Source: Dimorphilus gyrociliatus
Lineage: Eukaryota > Animalia > Annelida
Reading direction: 5' to 3'
DNA: 64,000 nt
NCBI GenBank assembly: GCA_904063045.1
Contig: CAJFCJ010000012.1
Coordinates: 2,771,576 to 2,835,575, forward strand
Part shown: in pieces, positions 15,793 through 64,000 of the stretch
Layout of the letters: each line of letters starts with the position of its first letter
How positions within the stretch are numbered: position 1 is the stretch's first letter
Translations under genes and position numbers: made by a program
Notes under the pieces: generated by a model
What the model saw: only the letters and a program-made list of their open reading frames with translations
Database searches by the model: none
Told to the model about the DNA's origin: nothing

Positions 15793-18050
15793 TTTTCAAT
15801 AATTTTCGATGTTTTAACAATATTTCCTTGTATAAAAAGGAACCGCTCTTTAAACAAAATCTGCATTGTTCACGTTGCAACTACAACATCTTTGTACTAT
15901 TACAAGTTCACAGAAACACAACAATATAATAGTAACTCAAATTGTGAAAAAGGTCAAGGTTAAAAGATCATTTTTTCATATTTTAGGTTAAATATTTGAA
16001 AAGAAAAGTTGACAAGATAACTGTTGATTAAAATCAAAAAATTTGTCTGTTAAAATAAAAAGGACAGTCTTATTCAATGTAAAATCTCCAATCCTTTTAC
16101 AATTCAAAGTCAAATATGTCTTTATGTTTATTTTATTAAATGAACAATTTAAACCAATTTCTGGATTTTGTTTGGAATTTTTAGAAAAATTTCCATCACT
16201 GAATTCATTTAAATTTAATTGTTTTTGAATGAAAGTTAATGGATTAATTATCTTAATCATTATTTCTTCATCAGATTCAAACTTTAACTGAAAGAACGAA
16301 TTCTTTGATTTTCTGGGTACAGTAACATACAAGTACTCATTGAACTTGTTATAGACAATTGACATTCTACTATTAGTATTTTTTATTAAAGTAATTTTCC
16401 TTCCTCCTAAAGAGAAGATGAAATGTTATGTACAATTTAAAAGCACCAAAAGTAATCAAACCTTTGAAATCAACTTTTACATAATTAATAACATTTGGCA
16501 ATTTATTTTTAAATGTTATATGAGTAATATTAAGCGGAAGTGGAAAAGTTGATTCAATTATACCCAATAAAATCACATTGTTATCTTCAATTAAACCAAA
16601 TTTCACTTGTGTGCATGTAAATTCAAGCCAGAAAAGTTTCCATTCTGAACAATTTAATAATTGTTGTAAATGATTAATTATAAGGCTTTTTCTTTCTGGT
16701 TTTAGTAATGTCAAAAAAGACTGCCCTATTGTATTGTGAGTTATTGAGCAGATAATTTCATCATTGCATTTAAAACTGACTACGAGAGAATTGCACAAGC
16801 TGAATAAACTACCTTTCACCTGATATTTAAACTCCTTTAGATTGTTTAAATCCTTATTGGACAGATGATAAATGACATCATTAGTTGTTTGAATGTTAAA
16901 AATACTACTGTCAACATCAGCTTTTGTATAAACATCAATCATTGAAATAGAAAATTTTTGAACATTGTAAACTTGTAAGATTTTCAAATGAAACCAAAGT
17001 TCATTGAATGTACTTGAATAATCTTTGCAATTTCTTTGTATTCCTTGTATTAAATCAAATTCTTGGCTAGAGGCAAAGCTCCATTTTACCAACATGCTTT
17101 TTATGATTATGTCCTCATTAAATCTTTTCAAGATATTTTTTAATTGAAAATTACAAGATAAATTCTTAAAAAAAGAAGATATTTTTACCTTTCTGTTACA
17201 CAATATTGATTTGGTTTAGCTGAATAGGCAAAAGTAATATTTATATATTCTCCAATGCAACCACTAATACATTCTGGATTCCAAAAACTATGGAAACTTG
17301 GTTCAAGGGCATTATCACAAATGCCACTAGATGCAGAACATATTGCCCCAATATCGCCTTTTGAAATGCTTGTATAAATTATATCATCATTTCCATCATC
17401 AGCTAGAAGAAATATTTAAAAATTACATTGTTTTGATAATGGAAAATTTGTATTATTAAATGTTTACCTGTATAAGAAAATACCAAAATTGAACTAAATC
17501 TTATATGATTCATACCACTGTGTCCTTCAAATGGTTGTAAATGAATGTACTCAACAGATTCTCCTTGACCATCTTCCAATAGATAACATGTTTCATAACT
17601 ATCCAATTTATAAATAAAAGTTGGCCCTCTGCTAAAAGTGACATTTAAAAGTTCAATTTTATACATTTTCGCTATAATTCTTTGATTTAAACAAAATGAA
17701 ATAATATTGTATGTTTTAAAAAAATTGACTTTAATCCATTGATGAGCGCAATCATCGGGTGAACAAAAAGATGCCCAACCACCCATAACCAACTGCTTAT
17801 CTTCAAGAGCATTTTCACAATTATAAGTAAAACTACCAATATAAGGATGATGTGATGATTCTTCACAAGTAGCCAAATTATGTCTATAGGCCACATTGAG
17901 AAGTTTTGCAAAAGCAGTTACATGGAATGATAAGAAAATAATAAAAGAAGTTATAAAGTAACTGTTCATTGTAAATTTCTTATTACAAATGTAAATTTCT
18001 TAAAATGTTAATTATTAAAAGCGAGATATTAATTATTTATAATCTAAACA
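15793..18050. repeat. Segmental duplication, near-identical to 47949-50206 (offset 32,156 bp)
   Basis: The start offset (15793 vs 47949), stop-codon offset (15988 vs 48144) and ATG offset (17969 vs 50125) are all 32,156; only scattered substitutions seen. Confidence 0.95.
15988..17969 (-). CDS. Secreted protein with F5/8C(discoidin)-like domains and a FAMeT (Methyltransf_FA)-like domain, copy 1; multi-exon
   Basis: Signal peptide MNSYFITSFIIFLSFHVTAFA; CENALED...GGWAS...QWIKVNF; second CDNALE...FW...GEYINITF; LLNCSEWKLFWLEFTCTQVKFG resembles the FAMeT-domain core. Short GT-AG introns join the ORFs in frame. Confidence 0.7.
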
Positions 18051-19393
18051 CATTAAGTAGTTGATTTTAGAAATTTTGAATAAGAACTATTTCAATTTGG
18101 CTATTGTTAACAAAAAATTCTTTTTTGTCTCAGGGTTTGTTATGTGTAATTATACAATTTATTATTAATATTCTTTTGCTCATTGTAAATCGAAAAACAG
18201 TTAATGTCATTAGAGGAAGGAACTGGTCAACAATAGAAAAAAAATTGATTTTGTTGTAGCTAACAAGAACTGAGACAAAAAAAACTATATGTTTTATGAA
18301 TTTTCTTATATTGTAGTTTATTAAACATGTTCAATTTTAAAAAATGGATGTCATGGAAAACATCAATAAATTTATTAATAGTGTGAATGTTTAAGTTATT
18401 AGAAAATCAATGTTTTCATTGTTAAGAATACAGAAGAACTATCTGAGGCATAAAAAATAATTTTTATTATTTTTTATTTTTAAATATGTACATTGTAAAT
18501 GTGTAGAAAATATTTTAAGCACTTGGTTATTAGCGTTTTCTATGACCCTCTTCCATTCACCCTCATGTATTATAGTTGTCTGTTTGTAGGTTTTAATCTC
18601 GCAAGGTTTCCTTTTGAAGATGAGTAAGGGATAATTTTTTGTGTGACTTTCAAAATAGCATGAAATCCTAAATTCACTCTTTCTACAATTTAGTTTCTGC
18701 TAAAAATGAAAACTACCAATGATTGTCCCTAAAAATTATTCAGATGAGTCATCTCTTTATTGAAATTTTTACATGTGATAAAAAATTCAATGGGTTTTGA
18801 CATGAATTTTACAAATGACATTATCTCTTTCATCAAAGGTTACATTGCATAAAATAGAAATTCTCTTTTTTAAAATTACAGCATTGAAATATATCTTGTT
18901 CAAGAGAGATACGTAGTGGAATTGTAGCTTGACGGGCAAACTGACCTTGAACTGTTTTGGAACTAAATTTCGAAGCTTATTGTTCATGATTCAATGGTTA
19001 TTGAGAGTATTGGAAAACAAATACTAAGATTGGTTTCCCTTGGTTCTTTTAGTCTTGATTTTTTTCTATTATTATTAGCTAACCTCCTTAGATTTTCCAT
19101 CTTTGGCAAGCTTTTTTTCACTTTCATTTAAATTTCATTTAAAGGTGATTTGTTGCAAGAATCAGTTCAATTTGTGAAATATAGGATTACTAAAAATAGT
19201 GTCTTAATTTGCAAACAGCATAGTTTACCTAAGGAGAATCAATACAGTGGCATGGAATGATACATTTGATAATTTTTGTGATATGGACTCTATCTAAAAT
19301 ATGGGTGTATCGAAAGCTTGATTATATCCTAATCTTCTAGACAAAATTAAGAAAGAACAACAAACTACATATTTATTTCATTCAAATTTGCTA

Positions 19394-22300
19394 CTATTTA
19401 GAAATTAAAGATCGCTTTTGAAGTATTTTTCTAACAAAATTTCCAAAATCTTCAATATCTTCATAAATACATGCAATAGAAGAGCTCTTCAATTTCTCTA
19501 TTGATACAAAATGTTCCCTGGTTATTGTCTATAATGGAAAAGATCATTAGTTAAATTGTATTTTCTTTGTGAGAGATTAATTTTGACAAAAATGAAAAAT
19601 TCATACATCATACACAACAGTTTTCAAGTCAAGTTTCTGATCCAGGCATAATGAATGACTGTGAACATGTTCCAATGCTTTTGTTACAGCTTTTATGATA
19701 AGTAAATATTTTAAGTTTTTAAACATGTTGCTATTAATTATGATTTCTTCAATAACACGATTTCTTTTGATATGAAAAATATGATTTTGATCTGCTCCAT
19801 TAATGTAATCCAAGACTATTTTTTGAAACAGTGAAAATTAAGATTTAATTTGAGAAATATTCTTTTTAATAATTACAGTTAGCTTCTATCTTAGATATCT
19901 CTAGTTCAACTCTCAATTGCCTTAAAAAGTAGACAAAAAAAGACACTTCCGGTTAAGATGGAAGACTATTAAATAGATAGAATAATATATTACACTTTTT
20001 TTTCCCTTCTCCTCTTGGCATGAACGTAACTCTTTGAGATCTGACTTATTATATAAACACTTGGATTGACCAGAGAATTTAGTGGTAAGAAGAGGCCAAT
20101 TAAAAAACTGTAGGCTCTATCTTTCAAATTCAATTTCAAGAATATTGATAGAAAACCTTGAAAAAGTAGTATTTAGAGAATTTATATAAATGGTATTGTT
20201 GAATTGTCTAACTTAATATTGAAAATGGGATGGAACATAAAATATTCGTCACTATAATTACAATAACTGTGTTTGAAAGTTTCGTATTTGAAGAAAATCT
20301 CATATGCTTCAGTCTAGTACGCGACTGTTTGACATAGATGTATATTTTAATATAACAAAATATTAGAATAATATTGAAAATTAGAAAGGCAACTCCAAAT
20401 GTTAAAAAGGAGTAAATCCACCCTTCCTTGCCAATGTTAAGAATGTTTATATTCAAACAGATTCTAGTTTTTGAATGAAAATTCTACTTTGAAAGAAGAA
20501 AGTAGTAATGAGTAGTTTAAAAATGAATATTCATACATTATACAAAATACTGGGTAAACTTGATATTAATGCTGTTAGGGTAACTAATGCTGTTATAACT
20601 ATGAATTTCCTCTCAAAAAGCTTGATGGAAATGCCATTGTTTAAAACTATTATAGTCTTTTCAACAGTCATCAATAGTAAACTGCCATTAGAGAGAAAGA
20701 AGCCAAACAGAACGATATTTCCCAAAAGTGTGCATGTAAAACTAAATCTCCACTTTTCGTCAAAGTTTAGATAATCGTTACCAAAATATAAATCTGCTAT
20801 TAAAATGATTGTTATGTATACTGATGTAAGCAAATCTCCAATGATATGAGTAGTCTGAAAAGAGATGGTTCCTTTCTCTTTAGTTAGAATTACGAAAATG
20901 ATAAAATTGGCTGCAGTTCCATACAATCCGTATAACGAAAATATTATTTCCATCAATTTTGAATTCAAGAGATTTGAACAGGTTTGAAAGGCAACATTTG
21001 TAGGTGTACATACAATTTTTGGATTAACATATTTCCAAAGCCAACAACAAATTATAAGATACATACTGTGTAATTTTTCAACTTTTCTCAACGATTTTAT
21101 TACTAAATTCATCCCTCTCAAACTTAAAATTGTTCTATTTAAGTGAATTTCTTTAATGCTTTTAAGTGAATTAAAGAATTCTCTCCCAATTGATATTAAT
21201 TTACAATTTGTCATTTTAAATAACACCAATCTATTCAAATTGACAACGTGTTTAAATTCAAGTTTTACTACTTTGGTGTAAGATATATCCAGAATTTTCA
21301 AAGAATAGAAATTGAAATCTCCTAAAAAATTAATATCATTCAAAGGATTGAATGATAAATTCAGATAGATTAGAATATTCCTTCTTAAACGTCCAGTAAG
21401 ATTTTGTAGACTCGCATTGTTTATTATAACATTAATTAAATTTGGATGCTTTGCCAAGTTAAATTCAAAAATTGGATAATCCTTGATTAGAATTGAAGTT
21501 AAAAATGAGGAAAGATTTTGATGGTTTATTCTAAATTTTCCAATTAATGAGAGTTTTTTTAAGGGAGATTGAATATTTATTTCTGTTATTGAATTGTTTA
21601 CATTGGCATTTTGCCAACAAGACATTTGGTATGAATAATTCATAATACAATAATGATTCAATTCATTTAATTTATAACATTGTAATTCATCGCTTCCCAT
21701 CAAACAGTCAACAATACCATTACAAACTTTTTGAAGAAGTATAAACATAGTAGAGTTTTTACATTTAAAAAAACCTTTCGGTTTGAAACTTTCTGTTTTA
21801 TAATTAAATTTTTTAAATGAGAAATTTTCTATTTATTTAAATTTTCACCTTCATCACAAAAATATTCATCATCGCCTTTGAAACAATGTTTTATACCGTC
21901 GCAAACTTGTTCAATTGAAATGCATACTTCTTCACATTGACAAAGCAATTCTCCAGCTTTACATTTTTTGTTTTTGCAGTTTCTAATTGCGTTAAATGGA
22001 TGTTGTACTTTTGATCTTAAATTTCCAGTTGAATCGTATTTAATGTTACATAAGTAATTTGTGAATTGATGACAGATTTTTTTCAGTGCTTTTGAATTAT
22101 TGTTTCTACGGCAACGCATTATATCTTCATCATCTCCCGAGTCGCAATCTGTCTTGAAATCGCATTGGGCATAATCGTAAATTATTTTCTTGTCACAAAC
22201 GAACAGGTTATTGTCTAAGTAAAGTTCAATTAATCAATTATCTAACTCTATTCTTTAAATTAGCAGCAACGGGATTACTAATTGTAAAACGGAGAGATAG

Positions 22301-25300
22301 ATACCTAGATCATTACTAATTTGCATAATATACTCGTAATCTTCGTCACTGCCATCTATGCAATGTTCTTCGCCGTCTGAAAAGTGTTCTTTCAATATGC
22401 ACTGCCCATTTTTGCAATTGCTTTTAGTTGTAAAGAAAAATTAGCATGTCTTAATTAGGTTTCAATATTTCAAAAAGTTAAAGCTATAGACCTAAAATTT
22501 TCTCCTTCGCATATTATTCTTTCTTTAAAATGATAAAAATAACTCAATTAAATGTTAATTAATAAGAAAACGCCTTTGAAAATTATGATTTTGATCTTTT
22601 GATAAAACTGTGGGCCTATCTAATCTAAAAAGTTAACACAATTACTACAACATTCCCCAATTGGTGAGAATCTATTTTCAGGCGTTTTCTTTCTCTATTT
22701 TTTTAAATTAGGCAAATTAACCGCAATAGTCTTCGTCAGATCCGTCTTTGCAGTCTTTAACATAATTACAAACTTGTGAATAATGAACTCTTTCCAATGA
22801 ATTAAAACATACAAAAGTATCATTTTCATTAATGTTACAGTTATTTTCATCTTCTTTTGAAGTACAATCGAAAATTCCGTCACATATATAGTTAATTGAT
22901 ATGCAGAATTGATCTATTTTGCATAAAAAACAACCAGCAGGACAGGTAACCACATCTTCTATTGGTAAATAAAAGTTGTTTATCTGTTGATGGACGATTT
23001 CTGAAAAGGTGGGAATATTAGAAATATTATTAATGTTTATATATGTGGTTGGGAGAAAATAGCCCAGTAGGTAAGAAAAGTTTAGGGTACGATTTTGGCC
23101 ATCTCTAGACTTTGGAACATCTTAATTTTAATATTTTCCAATTGGTGTAGGGCTAAGCTACGGATTAGGAAGCATAAAGTGGAAAGAATCTTGTTGATTT
23201 GTGAGTTAGGATTAGGGTAAAACACCAAAAAATTGGCCGTTTTCTCCAATACCCGTTTATAAAGTGGTACTTGGGAGTTTATGACAAACGTAATGACTAG
23301 TTTTCATATTACAATCTTTTGATTTAAAGTTGGCTTTTGATAATTTATAATAACTTTTGGGAGGAATTGCTGAAAACGACCGCATTTTTGAATTATTTTA
23401 GGAAAAGGTTTTTCAATTAGACACGTGTAAAACTAAGGAATTGAAAATAAGTTCGAAAACATGTGGTCGTTTTCAACAACATTGTATTATTTCTATAGTC
23501 AAAGAGTAACAGCTTTTAATATGCCAGAATTTGTTTAGTGCTCTCCTCTTTGCAGTTGGGTAACCGTAATAAACCTCAATATAATGTGATAGACTAACAC
23601 AATCCTGAAAGAAAATATAAACATTAGATTGATTTACTGTTGGCGAAAGATTTTTCATTTTGCCAGGAAAGGTTTGAAATTCTCAGTATGTTGATTTGGA
23701 AATAGCAATTCTTTAATAAAATTATCAGCAGTTACTTCAATACTCTTGGTTTTCCTGCCTGATTTCTTGTAAAATTCTAATAATAAAAAGCAAAAGAATA
23801 TAGTAATATACTTCCAGTGAGTGCTATCTGTCTTATTACTATTATAAAATGAAATAGAGACATCATAGCTCCTCACTATTTTATTCATTGCAGCGGCAAT
23901 TAATAAAATAACAAATGATCTACTACGAGTTGGAAATTCACTTAAAGTTAGGTTTTTTTCATGGCATATTTCTGCAGTTTCTTCAATTGAGTATCTTATT
24001 GGTTCAGCATATACGTAATAGCAGATTTCGTAAATTGATATGGAATTTTCGTCTTTTTTGCAATCGCTTCCTAAAAAAACAAATCAGTTGGAAAAGAAAA
24101 AAGAAACAGAGTTGATTTTTCACACTTTCTTTGCCTTTTGAACATTTCAAGTAGAATAAAACATGCCTATGATTCTCTCTGAAAAAATATGAATATTAAA
24201 ACAATAAATTATTAACACTCTGTATACAAATCACAACGTTTTTGTTAACGGTATCACTTTACATTGCCGTAAATGTGAACTATTGCATTTCATTGAACTG
24301 AGTACTATTGTATTAGTTAGGAATATTTGTATTTCAGGCGAATTTTGTAAAGGATTTACTATCGTTCCATAATCGAAATCAAAACTTTTACATATGACTT
24401 GAACTTCATGATATGAAATTGTTTTGAAATGAGTCCACATATTGTTAAATATCGTTTGAAATAATCCAGTATATTCACTGTATTCATGTTTATCCCCTTC
24501 GAGTAAACTCCCCGCCTCCAACATGTGAAGCTGATATTTAGCATCTTTAAGCGCATATATATATATATATATAAATAAATATACAATATGATATTTTCTA
24601 AGGTTTTTATACCTCCCCCTCTTTCATTGCAAATAGGATATGCATAATAGAATTTACCATTTGCAGGCCAAAAAGGTTTATTTAATTTGCATCCTCTAAT
24701 TTCATTTTTTATAATTTTACAATTTTCAATGAATATCTCAAATGACCTCATGTACTCTGATTCACTATGTAGAAAAGTCAATGTAGATGGTATCAAATTC
24801 AACCTTCGACATAATAAATTATTCATAATTATCATGTGATTTTTCTCTAAACTTTTGTAAGAGCTTGCGAATTTAAAAACACATGGAAAGGTAGATTGGA
24901 ATAAACTTTTTGATGAGCAAGTAAAAGCTGTCAAAGGGGATTTTGATTTTCCGTATGTAAAAGTCTTCTCTTTTGATACTTGAAAATCTAAAAAAAGGAA
25001 AATATTGGTATAGTAAGTGAGAAAAAACAATACATTTTCCAAAAGGAATCTAAAACTTGGACGAGTTTATCAAGTTTAGATTAATTGGCTTTGGACTGAA
25101 GAAATTACCGTATATTTCATAATAATGACATTTTATTATGGGAAAATGTTCATTTTTATCAGTTAAATGTCGAATTTGAATGGAAGAAAAATTTTTGTCA
25201 AAGATTGCAAAAGCAGATTTATTTACAAGATGTTCTGGAATTTCAGTAAATTTGAACTTTATTCTTCCACACAGCGAATTGTTGGTATCATTATATTCAT

Positions 25301-46700: not shown

Positions 46701-48143
46701 ATGTAAAAACAAACAAACACGGAATATTTATACTATAGCATCTCAAACAATAAACAAAATTATCATTTTTCCCAGCATTTTCTTTTGAACAGTTGTTGAA
46801 CAATCTAAAAATTTTTGAATGTTTAGGAAATTAGAGAAATCTTCAAAATTCTACTCACAAATACAATTTTCATTAATGCATTTCATATCAATTTTACTAA
46901 TATCTATAAATAAAAAATATGAATCAGTAAAACTGTTTTCTATAACAAAAGAAAAGATTCTTTTTTACCATTTTGTTTTTTATTACATGTAAATAAATTT
47001 GAATTTAAGTCATCAAAACCCAATTCAACACAAATTTTGGTATGAAAATTTTTATAATTTATAAAGTGATTTTTATTATAAATAAGATTAAATACTTCTT
47101 CAGAGTTTTTCATTTTAATTTTTATATCTAAATAACCTTCAATAAAACTATACCTTGAAGATAATCCACTAATATTGAATGTAACATTTCTATTACCAAA
47201 GAGTTGAAAACTGCTGTTGTTTTTTTTTGTGATAAAAAAAAATAACTTAGAAAAGTTGGATTATTCTTTTTCCTTTATATTTACCTTGACCTACATTTAT
47301 CAGCTTTAATTGCAGAGTCTATTAAACTTTTAATTATTAGTATAGTATTTATTATTCTTATAGTTTTTAAAAACATGGTACTGATTTTAAAATCAATTTT
47401 TTTGTTTATTTATATTAAAATTAACATTTCAATTGATCTTTGTAAAAAAGAAATTTAATACCAATTTTAAAAATATCTACGTTAAATCTAAAAGGTCACA
47501 TGATCATTAGAAGAATCAAATATTGAGTATTTCTTTTTCATTATTAAAATAAATTAATTTAATTTAGTTGTTTGTATTTTTTATATCTTTTATTAACAAT
47601 TAATAAAAAGGAGTATGAGAAAATACATTCTATTTTTTCGCATTTTAATTCTTCTCTAATGAGATGTTTTCTCCTAATTCTAATTAATATAGGTTTCTTT
47701 TAAATATTTTTAGTTCTATAAAAACTGAAAAGCCATTTTGACAAATAATTTATATATCTTAAACTAAAAATATATTATCCACAAAACAATGTTATTAGAC
47801 TGTAACAGACGCCACTATCGATTTAGCAAAAGAACATTGACACTTGTCAAAAAACTTTTACATAACATTGCATGTGAAAAAACAGTCTTTAATATTGAAG
47901 AATAGTCGATAAATCTGAAATCTGAAATGATTACCTTTCAAGTAAACATTTTCAATAATTTTCGATGTTTTAACAATATTTCCTTGTATAAAAAGGAACC
48001 GCTCTTTAAACAAAATCTGCATTGCTCACGTTGCAACTACAACATCTTTGTACTATTACAAGTTCACAGAAACACAACAATATAATAATAAATCAAATTG
48101 GGGAAAAGGTCAAGGTTAAAAGGTTATTTTTTCATATTTTAGG

Positions 48144-50125
48144 TTAAATATTTGAAAAGAAAAGTTGACAAGATAACTGTTGATTAAAATCAAAAAATTT
48201 GTCTGTTAAAATAAAAAGGACAGTCTTATTCAATGTAAAATCTCCAATCCTTTTACAATTCAAAGTCAAATATGTCTTTATGTTTATTTTATTAAATGAA
48301 CAATTTAAACCAATTTCTGGATTTTGTTTGGAATTTTTAGAAAAATTTCCATCACTGAATTCATTTAAATTTAATTGTTTTTGAATGAAAGTTAATGGAT
48401 TAATTATCTTAATCATTATTTCTTCATCAGATTCAAACTTTAACTGAAAGAATGAATTCTTTGATTTTTTGGGTACAGTAACATACAAGTACTCATTGAA
48501 CTTGTTATAGACAATTGACATTCTACTATTAGTATTTTTTATCAAAGTAATTTTCCTTCCCCCTAAAGAGAAGATGAAATGTTATGTACAATTTAAAAGC
48601 ACCAAAAGTAATCAAACCTTTGAAATCAACTTTTACATAATTAATAACATTTGGCAATTTATTTTTAAATGTTATATGAGAAATATTAAGCGGAAGTGGA
48701 AAAGTTGATTCAATTATACCCAATAAAATCACATTGTTATCTTCAATTAAACCAAATTTCACTTGTGTGCATGTAAATTCAAGCCAGAAAAGTTTCCATT
48801 CTGAACAATTTAATAATTGTTGTAAATGATTAATTATAAGGCTTTTTCTTTCTGGTTTTAGTAATGTCAAAAAAGACTGCCCTATTGTATTGTGAGTTAT
48901 TGAGCAGATAATTTCATCATTGCATTTAAAACTGACTACGAGAGAATTGCACAAGCTGAATAAACTACCTTTCACCTGATATTTAAACTCCTTTAGATTG
49001 TTTAAATCCTTGTTGGACAGATGATAAATGACATCATTAGTTGTTTGAATGTTAAAAATATTACTGTCAACATCAGCTTTTGTATAAACATCAATCATTG
49101 AAATAGAAAATTTTTGAACATTGTAAACTTGTAAGATTTTCAAATGAAACCAAAGTTCATTGAATGTACTTGAATAATCTTTGCAATTTCTTTGTATTCC
49201 TTGTATTAAATCAAATTCTTGGCTAGAGGCAAAGCTCCATTTTACCAACATGCTTTTTATGATTATGTCCTCATTAAATCTTTTCAAGATATTTTTTAAT
49301 TGAAAATTACAAGATAAATTCTTAAAAAAAGAAGATATTTTTACCTTTCTGTTACACAATATTGATTTGGTTTAGCTGAATAGGCAAAAGTAATATTTAT
49401 ATATTCTCCAATGCAACCACTAATACATTCTGGATTCCAAAAACTATGGAAACTTGGTTCAAGGGCATTATCACAAATGCCACTAGATGCAGAACATTTT
49501 GCCCCAATATCGCCTTTTGAAATGCTTGTATAAATTATATCATCATTTCCATCATCAGCTTGAAAAAATATTTAAATATTTACATTGTTTTGATAAGGAA
49601 AATTTGTATTATTAAATGTTTACTTGTGTAAGAAAATACCAAAATTGAACTAAATCCTATATGATTCATACCACTGTGTCCTTCAAATGGTTGTAAATGA
49701 ATGTACTCAACAGATTCTCCTTGACCATCTTCCAATAGATAACATGTTTCATAACTATCCAATTTATAAATAAAAGTTGGCCCTCTGCTAAAAGTGACAT
49801 TTAACAGTTCAATTTTATACATTTTCGCTATAATTCTTTGATTTAAACAAAATGAAATAATATTGTATGTTTTAAAAAAATTGACTTTAATCCATTGATG
49901 AGCGCAATCATCGGGTGAACAAAAAGATGCCCAACCACCCATAACCAACTGCTTATCTTCAAGAGCATTTTCACAATTATAAGTAAAACTACCAATATAA
50001 GGATGATGTGATGATTCTTCACAAGTAGCCAAATTATGTCTATAGGCCACATTGAGAAGTTTTGCAAAAGCAGTTACATGGAATGATAAGAAAATAATAA
50101 AAGAAGTTATAAAGTAACTGTTCAT
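48144..50125 (-). CDS. F5/8C + FAMeT-like secreted protein, copy 2
   Basis: ORFs nearly identical to 15988-17969; visible substitutions include HIRF>HIGF, DSSI>DSNI, NITH>NISH, PRKS>PKKS. Confidence 0.7.
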
Positions 50126-52168
50126 TGTAAATTTCTTATTACAAATGTAAATTTCTTAAAATGTTAATTATTAAAAAAGAGAAATTAATTATTTATAATC
50201 CAAACACTTAAAATAATTGATAATAAATAGATAATAAATAATAACCTTTCCAATTTAGATATTCCTTACAAAAGATTCTTATTGTCTTATATTTAAATAT
50301 GTTCAATTATACAATTTATAAATTAATAATATTCTTCTTTTCATTGTAAACTGAAAAACAGTTATTGCTGTTTAAAAGGAAGAACTTGTCAACAAGAGAA
50401 GAAAAAGGCCTGAGACAATAAATAACTATTTTTTATGAATGTTCTTAAACTATATGATCTTGAAAATGTTAAATCTTGAGCTCTCTTTTAATTTAATTTA
50501 AGAATCAACTGTAGTTAAATTTGAATACGACAGTAAGAGAATGAGGTTGGAAACTAATAAGTGCAGTTTCAAGAATGAAAGAACGTTTTAGATTATTTAT
50601 GAATATGTATATTGCAATTAAGTAAGATGAAGTTCAGGTTAGATTTACAAATATTTTTTGTCAAAATTGTAGTCATGGTCTTCTCAAAAGCTAGTAATCA
50701 GCTCCTTATCCTCGGATCTCTTTTAATTTTTTTGGAAGAGATGATACTTGCTTTAATATTATTGTACTATAAATATATATAATATCTATGAAGAGTTACA
50801 TTAACTGGAAGTTTTCAATAACTCTATGGACATTATCAATAAATTTATTCCCTTCACTCTCCTGTAGCTGTCTGTTTGTAGGTTCAAAGTCTACTGGGTT
50901 TCCATTTGAAGATGAGTAAGGGTTACTTTTTTGTGTGACTTGCAAATATCATGAAATTCTAAATTCACTCTTTCCATAAACTTATTACTGGTAAAGAAAG
51001 AAACTACAAAAGATTTTCCCTGAAAATTATTCAGATAAGTCATCTCTTTATTGAAATTTTTACATCTGATAAAAAATATTCAATGGGTTTTGACATGAAT
51101 TTTACAAATGACATTATCTCTCTCATCAAAAGTTATATAGAATTAGAATGGTTATAATTCAAGTTATTTTCCTATTAAATTCTAGTTGTTGTACCTTAAG
51201 TCAACAGACTCTTTGAGTAAAGATCAATGTGTACATATTGGGAGTTTTTTGAGTAAAAAAATTGTTTGATTGTTCTATAATCAAAAAAAAACTTTCCAAA
51301 AAGAATTATAAATTATAATATTAAAAAAAAGCGAAAAATTTGTCATAGTATCTAATATTGATAAACATTAATTATATAAAGTTTGCAAACAACTGACAAT
51401 AATGCATTTGCATTCAAAGTATTAATTCTTTTAATTGGCAATATAATCAGTCATATCAGTGATGTTCTTGAGATCATTTCCTTTTTTCCAGTATTTTAAA
51501 TAGTTAACATTAGTTGCAGGAAAATCTGATAAAGTGATATCAGTGAAGTTTGTTCATGGCGTAAAACTACCAATAGCTGATGGTAATTCTCCAACTATTC
51601 TTTATCATTATAGTCTTCTCTAAATGCAATAATTTTAATAAATTCAGATTACATGTGTGAAAAAGCGCCATCTGTTATTATACTTTAGTAAATGTATTTT
51701 TTCTCAATATCTTGACAAATATTAATTGTTGAGAATATTTTTAGCACACAGGATTATAAATATAAAAGAAGCTTTTATCGAACTCAGATCAAAAAAGTCT
51801 ATATGAGAATATTCCTCCAACTAACAAAAGAGGCTTGTCTGAATCCCTTGATAAGAACATGTAAAATTGTGGCTGTTGATACATATGGAAATAAAAGAAA
51901 TATGACAATATATTTGAATATTTGAATATTATAAGGAAATGACAAGAGACAATTGAAGAGCTGTTATATTTTATATTAACTAAAGAAACAGTTAGGAAAC
52001 AGTTAATGAACACAAATTTCACATACCTCTGTAATATTAGTAATTACTATTTTTAATTCTTGATTGCTTGTCTACCCCTTCAAACTATTGATAATATTGT
52101 TCCACACTTTATATAAAGATAAACAATAGATTGTTAACGGCAAGTGGTCATTATATTTATTATTATAT

Positions 52169-53212: not shown

Positions 53213-55013
53213 TTATGGAGTTTTTTTCTGTTTAAAAAAGTCGTATAGATTACCAGTTAAAAAATCAAGAAATTCAAAAACAGTTAAGAGTGTAGATCCA
53301 AGAACCAAGCCAAATGATCCACCCACATCGGATAATAGAGCGAGCCATGTATAGGCTGGTTTCTCGCTTAGTTGTTCAGAAGTCATTGATGAATAAAAGA
53401 CATTTATTTCTACAAAATCATTTATAAGGAAATGTTTTGAAGTTGAATGATGATTGGATAAATTTAGATAATGTTTGCCAAAAGTACCAAATGATAGCAT
53501 TGTACTATATTCATGAATAGAACATTGATCTTTACAAGAGCATTTTTCCATTTCGTCATGCTTTATAAAATCTATAGTAGAAGCTTTAACGCATAATAAG
53601 TTAAATGGAGCACAGATTAGAGTTGGTTTAGTAGCTATTTTGAGAATGAAAAACTAAAAAAAAAACAGTTCATAAAGTCATTAAAATCATATTTACGTAT
53701 CATTTCAGGGGATATACATTTGCATTTGTCAGCAATATAGTCTGAAAAACATGTCAATTGACATTTACTTTGCCGATAACTACTATCAGCATTGCAGTTT
53801 CCATAGGGAGTACTAAGTAGATTTTTAACTTTTAGTACTGTTGCCGCAAGATAATCTTTTCCAAATGTTACTTTAAATCCTTTTTCAAGCATTTGTGGAA
53901 CATCTTTTGAATCATGAATAAGAACCTAGATATGTGGAGAGTATGATGAAAATTTTCCAATCTATTTTAGTACTCAACTCTATATCCGGCTGACAATGAA
54001 TTAGCAGTAAAATAATTATCAGAACTAATATTAAGGTATAAACTTAATCCATTTGTTGCTCCAGGTGATTTTACTACTAAATTGGTTGTGTCTGTATAAT
54101 TTTTAATATTACTTTTACATTGTTCATGCTTTGCTAAAGAAAGATTAAATTTTTACCAGAATTAAATTGAAAGCATCCACCCATATTAGTTTGAATCAAT
54201 GTAAAATTCTGACTGTTGCAAGGTGTTTGTTTAAATGAACACTGTTTTGAAAAAACACAAATTATTAGATACTTTAAATTAAAAAGTAATTAAGGGATTC
54301 CAACAGAAAATGTCCACTTTTGTTGATATCTTCTATTAGCTTTCAACTTTTTTTTCTAATTTAACGACTACAGTTTGTTTAGATATTTTCAACTTTAAAT
54401 GGACATTTCCTGTTCCCCCTCCTCCTCCACTTTCTCTCTTTTACATAAACAATTGCTTCTTGAGCACTCTGTCCTAAGTTCTTGTATACTTGAGCCCAAT
54501 TCCAATATGAATTATTCTTATAGAATAGATGCTCCTCAGTGAGATTGACAGTATAGTTCTGTCGAGGGTCCGCAGTGAAAAGTGGACCAATGACCTTGTC
54601 AAAATCTTTTAATAAAAGCCTTTTTATTAATTCATATATAAACATTGATAAATTGAAAAAATAAAAAATAAACAACCATTTTCAAATACTTTTGGAGAGA
54701 AGAATTTATTCTCATTGCAGACTGTTACAGTTGGAAATCTCAGTACATTGTTATAAACGTTACTAATTTGAGAAATTCTTTCATATTTCAAGAAATAAGA
54801 GATGCGATCGTGAAGTTGATAGATCATAAACCCAAATCCAATAAATAGAAGAAACGCCCATAAGATCCTCTTGGAAGTGGAATTTTCATGACCAGTAGTA
54901 TACTTTATTCCAATTACACTAACATTTTGAGAGAACGTTTGAAAGCGTTTTATGAAATTTTTTTTTGTTCTCTTCTCTTCAGATTTTAATTTCTGATGCT
55001 GTTGCAGTTCCAT
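53213..55013 (-). CDS. DEG/ENaC (amiloride-sensitive-type) channel subunit; multi-exon
   Basis: TM1 RILWAFLLFIGF; FPTVTVCNEN; YRQSKCQLTC...CKC; TM2 LLSDVGGSFGLVLGSTLLTVFEFLD. Confidence 0.92.
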
Positions 55014-55866
55014 AGCTACTTTATAACAAACATTTTGTTTGACGAGACAAAATAATAAGATATCCTGCTAAAGAGATGTGTAGAGAGAGATTTATGAGTC
55101 TCTTTTGTCTCACGTATCATGCCTAACATATGATTAATGGGGCTTTTACACTAATGTTTTTACCCAATTATATGAATTTTTCATTTTGATGAAACAATGG
55201 ATAATATGGTGCTTTTACTTCTTTACTCTATGCCAAACAATCAATTATTAAATAACCTTGACATTGATTCTCATCCTTTGAAACAGTTTTTTCCAATCAC
55301 CAAAGTTTATGCTGACTTGGTCAAAGTTTCACTTGAATGAAAGGTGATCATTTCAGATTTTAGGCTTTCTAATATTCCTTCAATATGAAAGATATTTTAT
55401 CACATGCTATGCGATGTTAAAGCTTTTGCATGTATCGTTGTTCTTTGTTCTTTTGCCAAATCGAAAGTGGCGCCATCTGTTATATTCTAAAAACACTGTT
55501 TTTGTGGGTAATATATTTTTAGTGTAGAATATATTAATTATATGTCCAAGAGAAATTTCATTATTGATAGAACTCAAGATTATGGTAAAAAACCATTTTT
55601 TTTATAATTGGAGGAAAACATCTCATTAGGATTGGGAAAGGATTAAAACATTAAAAAATGGGACGTGCTTTCTCATACCCTTTTTGATCTGTATTTTTTA
55701 AAAAATACACAAGTGATCAATTTAGCAGGTTAGGGTTATATTCATAAATGGAATATAAAAAATAAGTTCAAATTTGTGCTAATGAGGCATCAATAATCTA
55801 AATTTTTCAAAACCAATAAATAACTTCTGTTTCCTATTTCCATTGCTCTTCGCAGTGGAAAAAATT

Positions 55867-58830: not shown

Positions 58831-61338
58831 TTACTGTATTTTTACTTTAAAATTACATTGTTTTAGCAAAGATTTCACAGGTTCTTCATTAGACCACTTG
58901 ACAAATGCTCGACCCAAAATAACTTTCTTTAAAGTAGATGATGAGGAGAGAAGTCCATTACAAATCACTGGTAATGTTGATACTTTTACACATTGATTTA
59001 AGCTAATATCAACTGTTTCAATTTTGTAAAAAACCTTCAAAGATCTTCCAAAAATTTCCATTGTACTTTCATTCATATTACAATCTTTAAAGTGGATATT
59101 CTTCAAAGAATTTTCCATTTTGGCAAGGCCTTGTAGAATATTTATAATTCCTCTTCCAATATTTCGATTGGAGTTGAAGTTGATTGTTTCAATTGCATGG
59201 AAATCTTTCAAATAATTCCCTATCTTTATACAATCATCTTCAAAAAAGTCACACATTTCAAAATTGATATTCTTAAGAGTAGTTTCTGATGAAGATAATC
59301 CTTCCAGAATGGTTTCCAATTCATTTTTAATATACAAATTACCTTTTAGACTGAAATCCACAATTGCAGAACAATTTCTTAACAATATTCCAATTATTCT
59401 ACATTCTTGTCTACTTAGTTCGCAATTTTCAAAATCAATGACTGTTAAAGTTTTTCTGGATTGAATAAGCCCTTCGCAAATATCTGATAATCCATAGGAC
59501 ATTTTGTTATTAAATGATAAATTGATTGCTTTTATAGTAGAGCAACTTTTCAACCAATTTCCAATCTGTCTACAATTTTCAATATTCAAATCATGATTTT
59601 GAAGGTTGATAGTTTCTAGGCTATTTGATGAATTGATGAGTACTTTATAAATATTAATTAGTTTATTGTCTTCAAAAAGTTGCGATGTTTGTATATCTAT
59701 AATTTCTAATGTTGAGCAAGATTGAAAGAATGTTTGAATCATTTCATATTGTTTTTCATTAACATCGCACCATTGAAAATGAAGTCTTTTCATAGTATTT
59801 GAAGATTGGTGAAGATTTTGAAAAATATATGACAATTCACTGCCTAAAATTTTATTATGGTATAAGTTGAGGGTCTCAAGCTTAGGGCAAGTCATTAACA
59901 ATTTGCCAAGTTTTATCCATGCCTCTCGATTTACTACGTTACAATCCTCCAGATTTAGATACTTTAAACAGTTTGATGAAGAATGAAGTCCTTCGAAAAT
60001 GTATTCTAATCCATTACCAACTCGAGAACCCGTTAAATCAATTGTTTCAATTTTTAAACAGGTTTTCAATGAATTTCCAAGATTTTCCAATTGAGGATAA
60101 CTTAAACTACATTCAGCTAAGCATAAACTTTTTAAACTTTGTGATAAATGAACAAGGCCATCAAAAATAGTCCATATTGATTTTATTTTCTTTTTAGAAT
60201 GTGAAAATATACATTTACTAAGATCAACATCTTCCAAATTAGAACAATTTTTCCATAAATTGTTTAAAATAGAATATATCAATGGACAATAATTAATTGA
60301 TGAAAGTTTAACTTTCTTTAGTGTTTCTGAGGAATGAATAAGTCGATTACAAATATAGCTTAATCCGTCACCTATCTTATAATTCCATTCCAGATGAATT
60401 GCCTCAATTTTTGAACCTTTTAAAAGGCTTTCTATCTCTTTACACTGTTCCATGTTTATATCGCATCCTTTGAAAGAGATTCTTATCACGTGATCAGTTG
60501 ATAATTTTAATTCATTGTCTAAAATACGCAGTTGTTGATCGTCTATTGTTTTGTTTGACATGTCAATTACTTTAGGTGAAAATTTCTCATTTTCACACTC
60601 CATTTTTAAAGCTTTTTCCATTGAAGTTATATCAGAATTTCTTTTAAGAGTACTATCATTGAGATTGGAGTTATTTTTCACTTTATAATCAATATTAATA
60701 CTTTCAATAATGTCTATTTCCAACTGTTTAACATTTGGTAAAAAATCTACTAAATCGCCATTTTCTTTTGCAATATTATAAACAAATTCTTCTCTCTTAT
60801 CATTTATATCTTTAAAATTTCTTCTGATAATTTGAAATTTATCTTTTACCATTTTAATTGCATTATTTTCAAATTCATTAATCTTATTCCAATTTTCATA
60901 CATTTTTTTTATTTCGTCATTGTGAAAATTTTCTAAAATTTCTTTTCTCTTTTCCAATTTCACCATTGAAAAAACATTGCAACTTCTATGATTTTCTTCT
61001 TGGCATAAAATACAGATTTTTTCTACATTATGAGTTGAACAGTAAAATGATGCTTCCTTTTTATGATCTTTACATAAATCCATATGTATTGACTGTTTTC
61101 TAAAAAGATCTTTAACACAATATTTAGGGATCATTTTTATACCATTTTGCTGTAGCAAATAATCTTGCCTACATTCTGGACATTTAATATTACTGTGTTT
61201 AATCTCTAAATTAGTTAAACAAGCAAAACAAAATATGTGCTGACAAGGTAAAATTCTAGGATCATTCCCAAACCAAGATTCTGAGCATATGCCACACACT
61301 ATATCTCTAATACTTACAAAATAACCTTGGGTCGCCAT
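58831..61338 (-). CDS. Intronless RING + B-box-like + coiled-coil + RI-type LRR protein, 835 aa from MATQG
   Basis: CGIC...PCQHIFCFAC...CPEC RING; CKDH...YCSTH...CILC...HRSC B-box-like; charged helical linker; then a long array of about 28-aa LxxLxLxxN/C repeats. ATG at 61338 is preferred over the non-canonical upstream ORF start. Confidence 0.9.
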   Translation of the reverse strand: MATQGYFVSIRDIVCGICSESWFGNDPRILPCQHIFCFACLTNLEIKHSNIKCPECRQDYLLQQNGIKMIPKYCVKDLFRKQSIHMDLCKDHKKEASFYCSTHNVEKICILCQEENHRSCNVFSMVKLEKRKEILENFHNDEIKKMYENWNKINEFENNAIKMVKDKFQIIRRNFKDINDKREEFVYNIAKENGDLVDFLPNVKQLEIDIIESINIDYKVKNNSNLNDSTLKRNSDITSMEKALKMECENEKFSPKVIDMSNKTIDDQQLRILDNELKLSTDHVIRISFKGCDINMEQCKEIESLLKGSKIEAIHLEWNYKIGDGLSYICNRLIHSSETLKKVKLSSINYCPLIYSILNNLWKNCSNLEDVDLSKCIFSHSKKKIKSIWTIFDGLVHLSQSLKSLCLAECSLSYPQLENLGNSLKTCLKIETIDLTGSRVGNGLEYIFEGLHSSSNCLKYLNLEDCNVVNREAWIKLGKLLMTCPKLETLNLYHNKILGSELSYIFQNLHQSSNTMKRLHFQWCDVNEKQYEMIQTFFQSCSTLEIIDIQTSQLFEDNKLINIYKVLINSSNSLETINLQNHDLNIENCRQIGNWLKSCSTIKAINLSFNNKMSYGLSDICEGLIQSRKTLTVIDFENCELSRQECRIIGILLRNCSAIVDFSLKGNLYIKNELETILEGLSSSETTLKNINFEMCDFFEDDCIKIGNYLKDFHAIETINFNSNRNIGRGIINILQGLAKMENSLKNIHFKDCNMNESTMEIFGRSLKVFYKIETVDISLNQCVKVSTLPVICNGLLSSSSTLKKVILGRAFVKWSNEEPVKSLLKQCNFKVKIQ

Positions 61339-61613
61339 TTTCTTTTTGGAATGTTCAAAAAGATATTGATTTTGCATTGATAACAAAGTATAATGTAAAT
61401 AACATAGGCTTAAAAGATCAAAGTCATAATTACTTATGTGATGCACTTCAGTTCAATATAAACCTTGGTATATTTTTATCTTTTAAAATTAACATTTTTT
61501 TATTATCTTAAAAATATTGATTAGTAAATTTAAATGAATTGGACTCTTCTAGACTGTAAATTTCGCCTCCTTATACCAGTCTAGGCTGTAATATAAGTGT
61601 CCACTTTTTCCAA

Positions 61614-63498: not shown

Positions 63499-64000
63499 TT
63501 ACAATACAACAAAGTACTCATAACCTGGATAGGTTTTAGTGCCAGCTTCTTCTTCAGTGGTGTTTTGGTAGTTGTGAAAATATTTTCCCAACATTCCAAC
63601 AGTTATTTTTGTCATATTTGCTTGTTTTCCAGATTTTGCTTGTTGGTTTTGGGCTTGTTGCATAAACTTCTTAACTGATTCCCCTCTTCTGATAAAGAAT
63701 GGAAGGAAAACTTGTTTTGTTGCAAAATTGATAATGGCTCCAGAATTTTGTAAGAAGTCACAACCAAGTATTATAGCCATATCTAATTTTTCCATAATGA
63801 AAAATTCTTGTTTCATAATTCTTCCAGCAAACTGGATGTTCAATTTTGCTTTTCCTTTAATCTTTAAAGCTTTTCCATCTGCTGAAGTGATGGTTGGTAA
63901 GTCTGTAGTTTCTATCATGATGAAATTATGGTCCATTAGCTTGATTTCTTTTTCAGTAATAAAGGACATAAGGGCTGTTGTATCACATTAGGCAATGACC
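63499..64000 (-). mobile_element. Gypsy-type retropepsin (aspartic protease) relic
   Basis: VIA*CDTTALMSFI (degenerate DTG), SADG..LKIKG, IILGCDFL. Confidence 0.8.

Follow-up and report, generated by a model that had tools for sequence, protein, structure and literature searches.

What do the last three exons of a receptor gene in Dimorphilus gyrociliatus encode, and do they belong to the receptor at all? The question is raised by a 64,000-nucleotide stretch of the genome of this annelid (the window) which contains three copies of the gene, the second of which had been described from its letters as ending in exons of 44 nt, 209 nt and 19528-19394, in phases 2, 1 and 0. This structure was borne out by the AG/GT borders of the exons, which are preceded by introns of 73, 61 and 78 nt, and by their joint translation, which yields the 129 residues written in the preliminary description. 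An RNA contig of run X2 (from another study, 2017) carries the exact 19528/19607 and 19815/19877 joins with zero mismatches, i.e., the 3' junction of the first tail exon (exon A) and both junctions of the second (exon B). Spliced RNA, which had been proposed as a check, is thus at hand for two of the three tail junctions, while the third, between the TM7 exon and exon A (19994/19920), lies outside RNA coverage, the contig reaching just 22 nt into exon A. The exon B acceptor (window 19816-19825, minus strand) is A-rich beside its AG, yet it is used in the RNA.

Upstream of the tail, a stop-free path with GT-AG borders throughout runs over 1417 codons from 24987 to 19394, supported in part by RNA (Table 1), and the gene extends to at least 26012. 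It encodes multiple LDLa repeats in the ectodomain, LRRs (matched clearly in copies 1 and 3 but weakly in copy 2) and a Cys-rich hinge with an invariant CC..C..C pattern before TM1, followed by a rhodopsin-class 7TM domain (7tm_1) in which NPxxY is kept. At the end of TM3 (window 20662-20654, minus strand) copy 2 has EKT instead of the E/DRY motif, which reads ERY/DRY in copies 1 and 3 and is also kept as such in two relatives. The three exons are confirmed, and in our view they truly form the coding end of an intact rhodopsin-class receptor that is GRL101-like (LGR type C2-like), their join to TM7 being well supported, if inferred.

Table 1. Position of the receptor and tail features, with the kinase elements to which parts of the tail are predicted to correspond (- denotes the reverse strand; L numbers denote contigs of relatives).
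Feature	Position	Strand	Remarks
Copy 2 tail exon A	19920-19877	-	44 nt; enters in phase 2, leaves in phase 1; kinase position roughly alphaC
Copy 2 tail exon B	19815-19607	-	209 nt; kinase beta4/beta5-alphaD-alphaE, invariant His at 19663-19661, dead catalytic-loop remnant
Copy 2 tail exon C	19528-19394	-	135 nt including the stop; alphaF preceded by a short beta7/8 remnant, activation segment absent
DIEDFG	19442-19459	-	kinase subdomain IX, start of alphaF; from profile alignment and Asp column
RKILQKR	19412-19432	-	basic amphipathic end of alphaF, family-specific; best-conserved stretch of the tail
Copy 2 TM7 exon (NPSVY) and basic juxtamembrane stretch	19994-20156	-	phase-2 donor at 19993, outside RNA coverage
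Copy 2 TM5-TM6 exon	20213-20483	-	Pfam 7tm_1, E 2.8e-07
Copy 2 exon with last LDLa, LRRs, Cys hinge, TM1-TM4	20537-21792	-	Pfam LDLa, LRR; 5' junction in RNA
Copy 2 LDLa repeat exons	23120-22722, 22522-22492, 22420-22305, 22214-21849	-	Pfam LDLa; three junctions in RNA
Copy 2 upstream ectodomain exons, SRCR-like and C-type-lectin-like	23271-24987	-	SRCR E 0.005; lectin judged by eye and from resemblance to copies 1 and 3
Copy 1 tail exons	2447-2404, 2338-2130, 2063-1932	-	44/209 lengths and phases as in copy 2
Copy 3 tail exons	41508-41465, 41405-41197, 41130-40972	-	44/209 lengths and phases as in copy 2; most diverged sequence
TM7/exon-A continuous frames of relatives	L004:3231-3390, L006:2931-3120, L009:671-893, L012:531-712		second gene type

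The window also holds a 2.46-kb near-duplicate (15793-18244 and 47949-50406, 96.7%) with a gene for an unannotated protein that has a signal-peptide-like start, looks discoidin-like by eye and has no Pfam match. Exons resembling a DEG/ENaC channel gene by eye lie at 53216-55067, a single-exon ORF of 873 codons with a RING-like start at 58834-61452, and fragments resembling, again by eye, a Tc1/mariner transposase and a retroelement protease at 1-270 and 63502-63987 (all on the minus strand).

Ten tails were compared, namely the three of the window and seven from two other sample sets, one of them the Tara Pacific long-read metagenomes (PMC13083261). A search of 1.8 billion proteins with an exon B profile retrieved 8 short true kin, together with 8 LysM proteins which were discarded as repeat and composition noise arising from an AT-rich bias; word-based homologue searches led to close kin only and to no full-length receptors of other phyla. 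The tail is found directly behind a 7TM gene in six of the seven contigs of relatives. Exon A measures 44 nt and has the same phases in five genes (copies 1, 2 and 3, L003 and L010), which share the place and phase of the donor, and it is followed by an exon of 209 nt in L003 and of 206 nt in L010. The exon lengths that had been called identical are therefore so (44/209) in the window's three copies and one relative, but not across the family, exon B ranging from 194 to 209 nt in the relatives. The 44-nt mini-exon is a feature of only some paralogues. Four further relatives (L004, L006, L009 and L012) have no intron after TM7, and an NPxxY-type helix, the exon-A segment and the phase-1 donor follow one another in a single frame. 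No other observation speaks as strongly for receptor and tail being made as one protein.

Alternatively, the main copy 2 mRNA might keep the post-TM7 intron and end one codon on, in which case the tail would belong to a minor isoform and fusion would not be the rule. Indeed, the unspliced frame after the TM7 exon reaches a stop one codon later and corresponds to a normal short-tailed receptor, no RNA contigs were found over 19899-20481, and four introns upstream are retained in the X2 run, whose contig is unspliced at 22492-23721 (three whole introns, of 141, 150 and 199 nt, and a portion of one of 131 nt). The retained introns are, however, the longest ones (131-199 nt), whereas introns of 55-121 nt are spliced in this run and the post-TM7 intron measures 73 nt. 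The median intron of D. gyrociliatus is 66 bp, and short introns are removed more efficiently (10.1101/2020.05.07.078311). In addition, five genes share donor place and phase, and the four intronless relatives lead from TM7 straight into the tail. That the tail is a separate gene is at odds with the lack of an ATG in exon A and the little room that 73 nt would offer. On balance we consider an optional tail improbable. The unspliced RNA had also brought up the possibility of copy 2 being a pseudogene, which was rejected given the open GT-AG path and the retention of only the four longest introns.

The tails of copies 1 and 2 align with a local score of 100 (shuffles: mean 32, maximum 65, n = 2000; z 11.7), the best register is the one set by the splice sites, and RKILQKR is, as claimed earlier, identical in both. 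For copy 3, amino-acid alignment alone was not significant against the others (z 0.9 and 1.8), and the comparison with shuffled controls that had been suggested thus separates copies 1 and 2 far from chance but does not do so for copy 3 by residues alone. Selection on the coding sequence is apparent from several features of the ten tails. None contains a stop, whereas shuffling the nucleotides of the copy 2 exons yielded 0 stop-free sequences in 20000; the last intron follows the same column in 10/10; a conserved His and the last helix's Asp are spaced by 42 residues in eight tails and by 45 in the other two; and this Asp is residue 24 of exon C in 8/10. Identity exceeds that expected from composition by 0.13 at codon position 1, by 0.23 at position 2 and by 0.05 at position 3, and the ungapped pair of copies 1 and 2 gives identities of 0.38, 0.53 and 0.35 versus expected values of 0.28, 0.33 and 0.32. 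Amino-acid identity between tails is just 15-29%; about 25 columns stay hydrophobic, and His, Asp, Gly, Lys, Leu and Gln positions are nearly invariant. In the RKILQKR columns a basic residue is found in 10/10, K in 9/10, L in 9/10, Q in 10/10 and a further basic residue in 9/10. As synonymous sites are saturated (pS 0.6-0.76), dN/dS is not estimable. The preliminary description had deduced purifying selection on a folded domain; the part on selection stands on the absence of stops, intron column, spacing, codon pattern and hydrophobic columns, while the domain amounts to about half a kinase and is better called probably folded. Purifying selection on a coding tail of this kind is thus supported by the sequence comparison.

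The likeness to protein kinases emerged from database searches with single exons (or with proteins of the databases whose frame runs on through an intron) and from local computations, in which alone the joined tail was used. By ESM features, exon B of copy 2 reaches 0.95 to kinase clusters, with 25 of 30 matches being such clusters and 1/100 shuffles attaining the score, and a relative finds kinase families in 10/10 matches (0.87-0.89). Against PDB, the exon B profile retrieves CaMKII chains only, at alphaD-alphaE (best E 0.05), and the sole Pfam match of exon C of L004, which has DVFSFG, is to positions 169-199 of Pkinase (E 0.02). A kinase HMM was built from 81 unrelated kinases fetched by DNA motif and run against 200 shuffles per tail: copy 1 (14.3 bits; shuffles at most 7.4), L004 and L006 score above all of their own shuffles, with exon B falling on beta4-alphaE and exon C on alphaF, and copy 2 (5.0 bits) stays within its own. 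Aligned with hhalign, the tail profile and the kinase profile score 28.0 (column shuffles at most 16.9 and block shuffles at most 21.9, n = 100 each; reversed 13.3) with a probability of 26%. None of the window's tail exons had a Pfam match, a phmmer search of PDB with a relative was empty, and the one ribosomal match of the exon C profile was put down to chance. AlphaFold models from shallow alignments of 12-18 rows are of low confidence (pTM 0.34 and 0.37), consist of long helices and had no Foldseek match; they were counted neither for nor against a kinase fold.

Two kinase landmarks are present in the tails, namely an alphaE that ends in His (invariant in 10/10) before the catalytic-loop region, and the Asp...Gly of alphaF (subdomain IX; D 9/10, G 9/10). 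The placement of DIEDFG at the kinase DxWSxG position, already proposed from the letters, is upheld by the Pkinase match of L004 exon C and by the profile-profile alignment. Reading the DFG within DIEDFG as the Mg-binding motif was rejected, since its Asp occurs in copy 2 only and the column belongs to alphaF. Furthermore, the GRL101 of the hemichordate Ptychodera, alone among the seven printed in Fig. S14 of 10.1101/2021.04.15.440029, has a long tail with kinase landmarks. Read by eye from that alignment (its sequence is in none of our computations), it shows an alphaC-beta4 loop, hinge, alphaE, dead catalytic loop, DFC, alphaF Asp and a subdomain-XI-like end.

Could the tail be a lineage-specific helical domain that resembles kinases by accident? 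The E-values are weak, no structure matched, and the AT-rich bias did produce the false LysM matches in the same profile search. Yet, by five methods, individual exons map to the kinase in the correct order, alphaD-alphaE first and alphaF second, the scores surpass those of shuffled and reversed controls, and a related receptor, judged from the printed Ptychodera alignment, bears a fuller kinase tail, which makes a chance likeness quite improbable. Weak but concordant signals and the hemichordate tail of pseudokinase type rather indicate descent from a protein kinase, which is well supported, albeit by inference.

Of a kinase, the tail retains roughly the span from alphaC to alphaF. The Gly-rich loop and the beta3 Lys are absent, the tail aligning only from kinase profile position ~64-88 on with nothing but TM7 upstream, as are the HRD catalytic Asp and the Asn downstream of it. 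The DFG/APE activation segment is absent as well and appears as a gap in the profile alignment; a His-to-Asp spacing of 42-45, compared with 61-83 in kinases, indicates that it is gone. Similarly, the chain ends 16-33 residues past the alphaF Asp in all tails, from which we conclude that alphaG-alphaI are missing. The tail was accordingly rejected as an active kinase (no G-loop, beta3 Lys (VAIK), HRD Asp, DFG or APE) and as a whole pseudokinase (no N-lobe ATP elements, no alphaG-alphaI), and to judge by the missing motifs it cannot bind ATP or phosphorylate.

Receptor pseudokinases such as HER3 and the kinase-homology domain of receptor guanylyl cyclases have a full two-lobed fold and often bind ATP. 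The tail resembles them as a dead kinase relic under a receptor and differs in being about half the domain, without an ATP site. That it might still act as a nucleotide-binding allosteric pseudokinase, like the kinase-homology domain of the cyclases, would suit its place right under the receptor and its dead catalytic loop, which looks similar to theirs, but is hard to reconcile with the lack of G-loop, beta3 Lys, DFG and alphaG-alphaI and with a length of 129 residues versus ~250-290; we consider it very improbable.

We favour, with a probability of about two in three, the explanation that the tail is a kinase-derived, dead and trimmed core on an intact GRL101-like receptor, and that it most likely acts as a folded, non-catalytic docking module. 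A protein-kinase domain would have joined an ancestral receptor and lost its activity before being cut to about the alphaC-alphaF core with deletion of the activation segment, leaving a small docking module under the receptor whose fold and role are both conjectural. In place of the part of alphaF that is buried in kinases, the tails have the basic RKILQKR helix, specific to the family and with a net charge of +2 to +5, which would then be the working surface. Lipid of the inner leaflet might be bound by it, or else a partner, be it a G protein, arrestin, calmodulin or a kinase; either contact might tune signalling, through coupling, or trafficking.

The tail could also be a vestige, translated and kinase-derived but without a partner, kept for no other reason than the damage that misfolding or a frameshift at its end would do to the receptor. 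The low identity of the tails would fit, as would a stepwise erosion from the hemichordate form to the present one; in snail, cockroach and echinoderms, bona fide GRL101 orthologues have no such tail, as far as the published alignment displays them. But a stop after TM7 would remove the tail free of cost, and nevertheless ten genes have stayed stop-free; moreover, the best-conserved residues, RK-I-L-Q-K-R, are of surface type and no kinase heritage, which points to a new constraint. A vestige thus seems unlikely, and a kept docking module remains our preferred explanation. The EKT of copy 2 raises, but does not show, a role independent of G proteins. It is tempting to speculate further that GRL101-like receptors are unrecognised bilaterian GPCR-pseudokinase fusions, reduced here to a half-domain that folds by itself and whose basic alphaF helix lies exposed and provides the receptor with an output of its own, so that copies without the E/DRY Arg, such as copy 2, could signal without classical G-protein coupling; we offer this tentatively and would not count on it.

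The order of LDLa repeats, LRRs, Cys hinge and rhodopsin-class 7TM is that of GRL101 and LGR type C2 receptors (Lymnaea GRL101, arthropod LGR5; PMC4079206, PMC11863921, 10.1101/2021.04.15.440029), the class being assigned by architecture. Copy 2 adds lectin-/SRCR-like parts upstream, and the genes are fast-evolving local paralogues. Its 129-residue kinase-derived tail has no counterpart in six of the seven GRL101 of Fig. S14. The seventh, from Ptychodera, is by eye alike in having a dead kinase-like tail with alphaE, non-catalytic loop, short activation region and alphaF Asp; as printed, it keeps a linker, more of the N-lobe, the DFG-like DFC and the subdomain-XI-like end. Compared with it, the annelid tail lacks these parts, begins near alphaC, has ~14 residues fewer from alphaE to alphaF and does not continue beyond alphaF. 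No remark on the Ptychodera tail was found in the accessible text of that paper (10.1101/2021.04.15.440029). Together the two forms may offer an erosion series from a near-whole pseudokinase in a hemichordate to a half domain. Literature searches combining GRL101 or LGR with kinase or pseudokinase, whose coverage had most subscription journals outside it, found no paper describing a bilaterian hormone-receptor-type GPCR with a stripped, inactive kinase-middle tail. Its small exons behind an apparent stop and the lack of a Pfam match may explain why it was missed.

Fusions of a 7TM domain with a C-terminal kinase-derived domain are otherwise known as GPCR-TKL/K and GPCR-TK from oomycetes, amoebozoans, choanoflagellates and sponges (PMC12716839, PMC6033456). 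According to a 2025 survey, GPCR-TKs among animals are found in sponges only, the 7TM domains of the choanoflagellate fusions cluster with no other GPCRs, and no experimentally tested GPCR-kinase fusion was known (PMC12716839). Those proteins carry whole, Pfam-detectable kinases on 7TM domains of presumably other families, whereas no full Pfam-detectable kinase domain was found behind the 7TM here, and a dead half is joined to a rhodopsin-class LGR 7TM (7tm_1). This raises the question of whether a kinase core from alphaC to alphaF is able to fold and function by itself; the tail is small enough to be expressed and tested directly. A kinase-derived tail on bilaterian rhodopsin-class LGRs would extend the GPCR-kinase fusion design.
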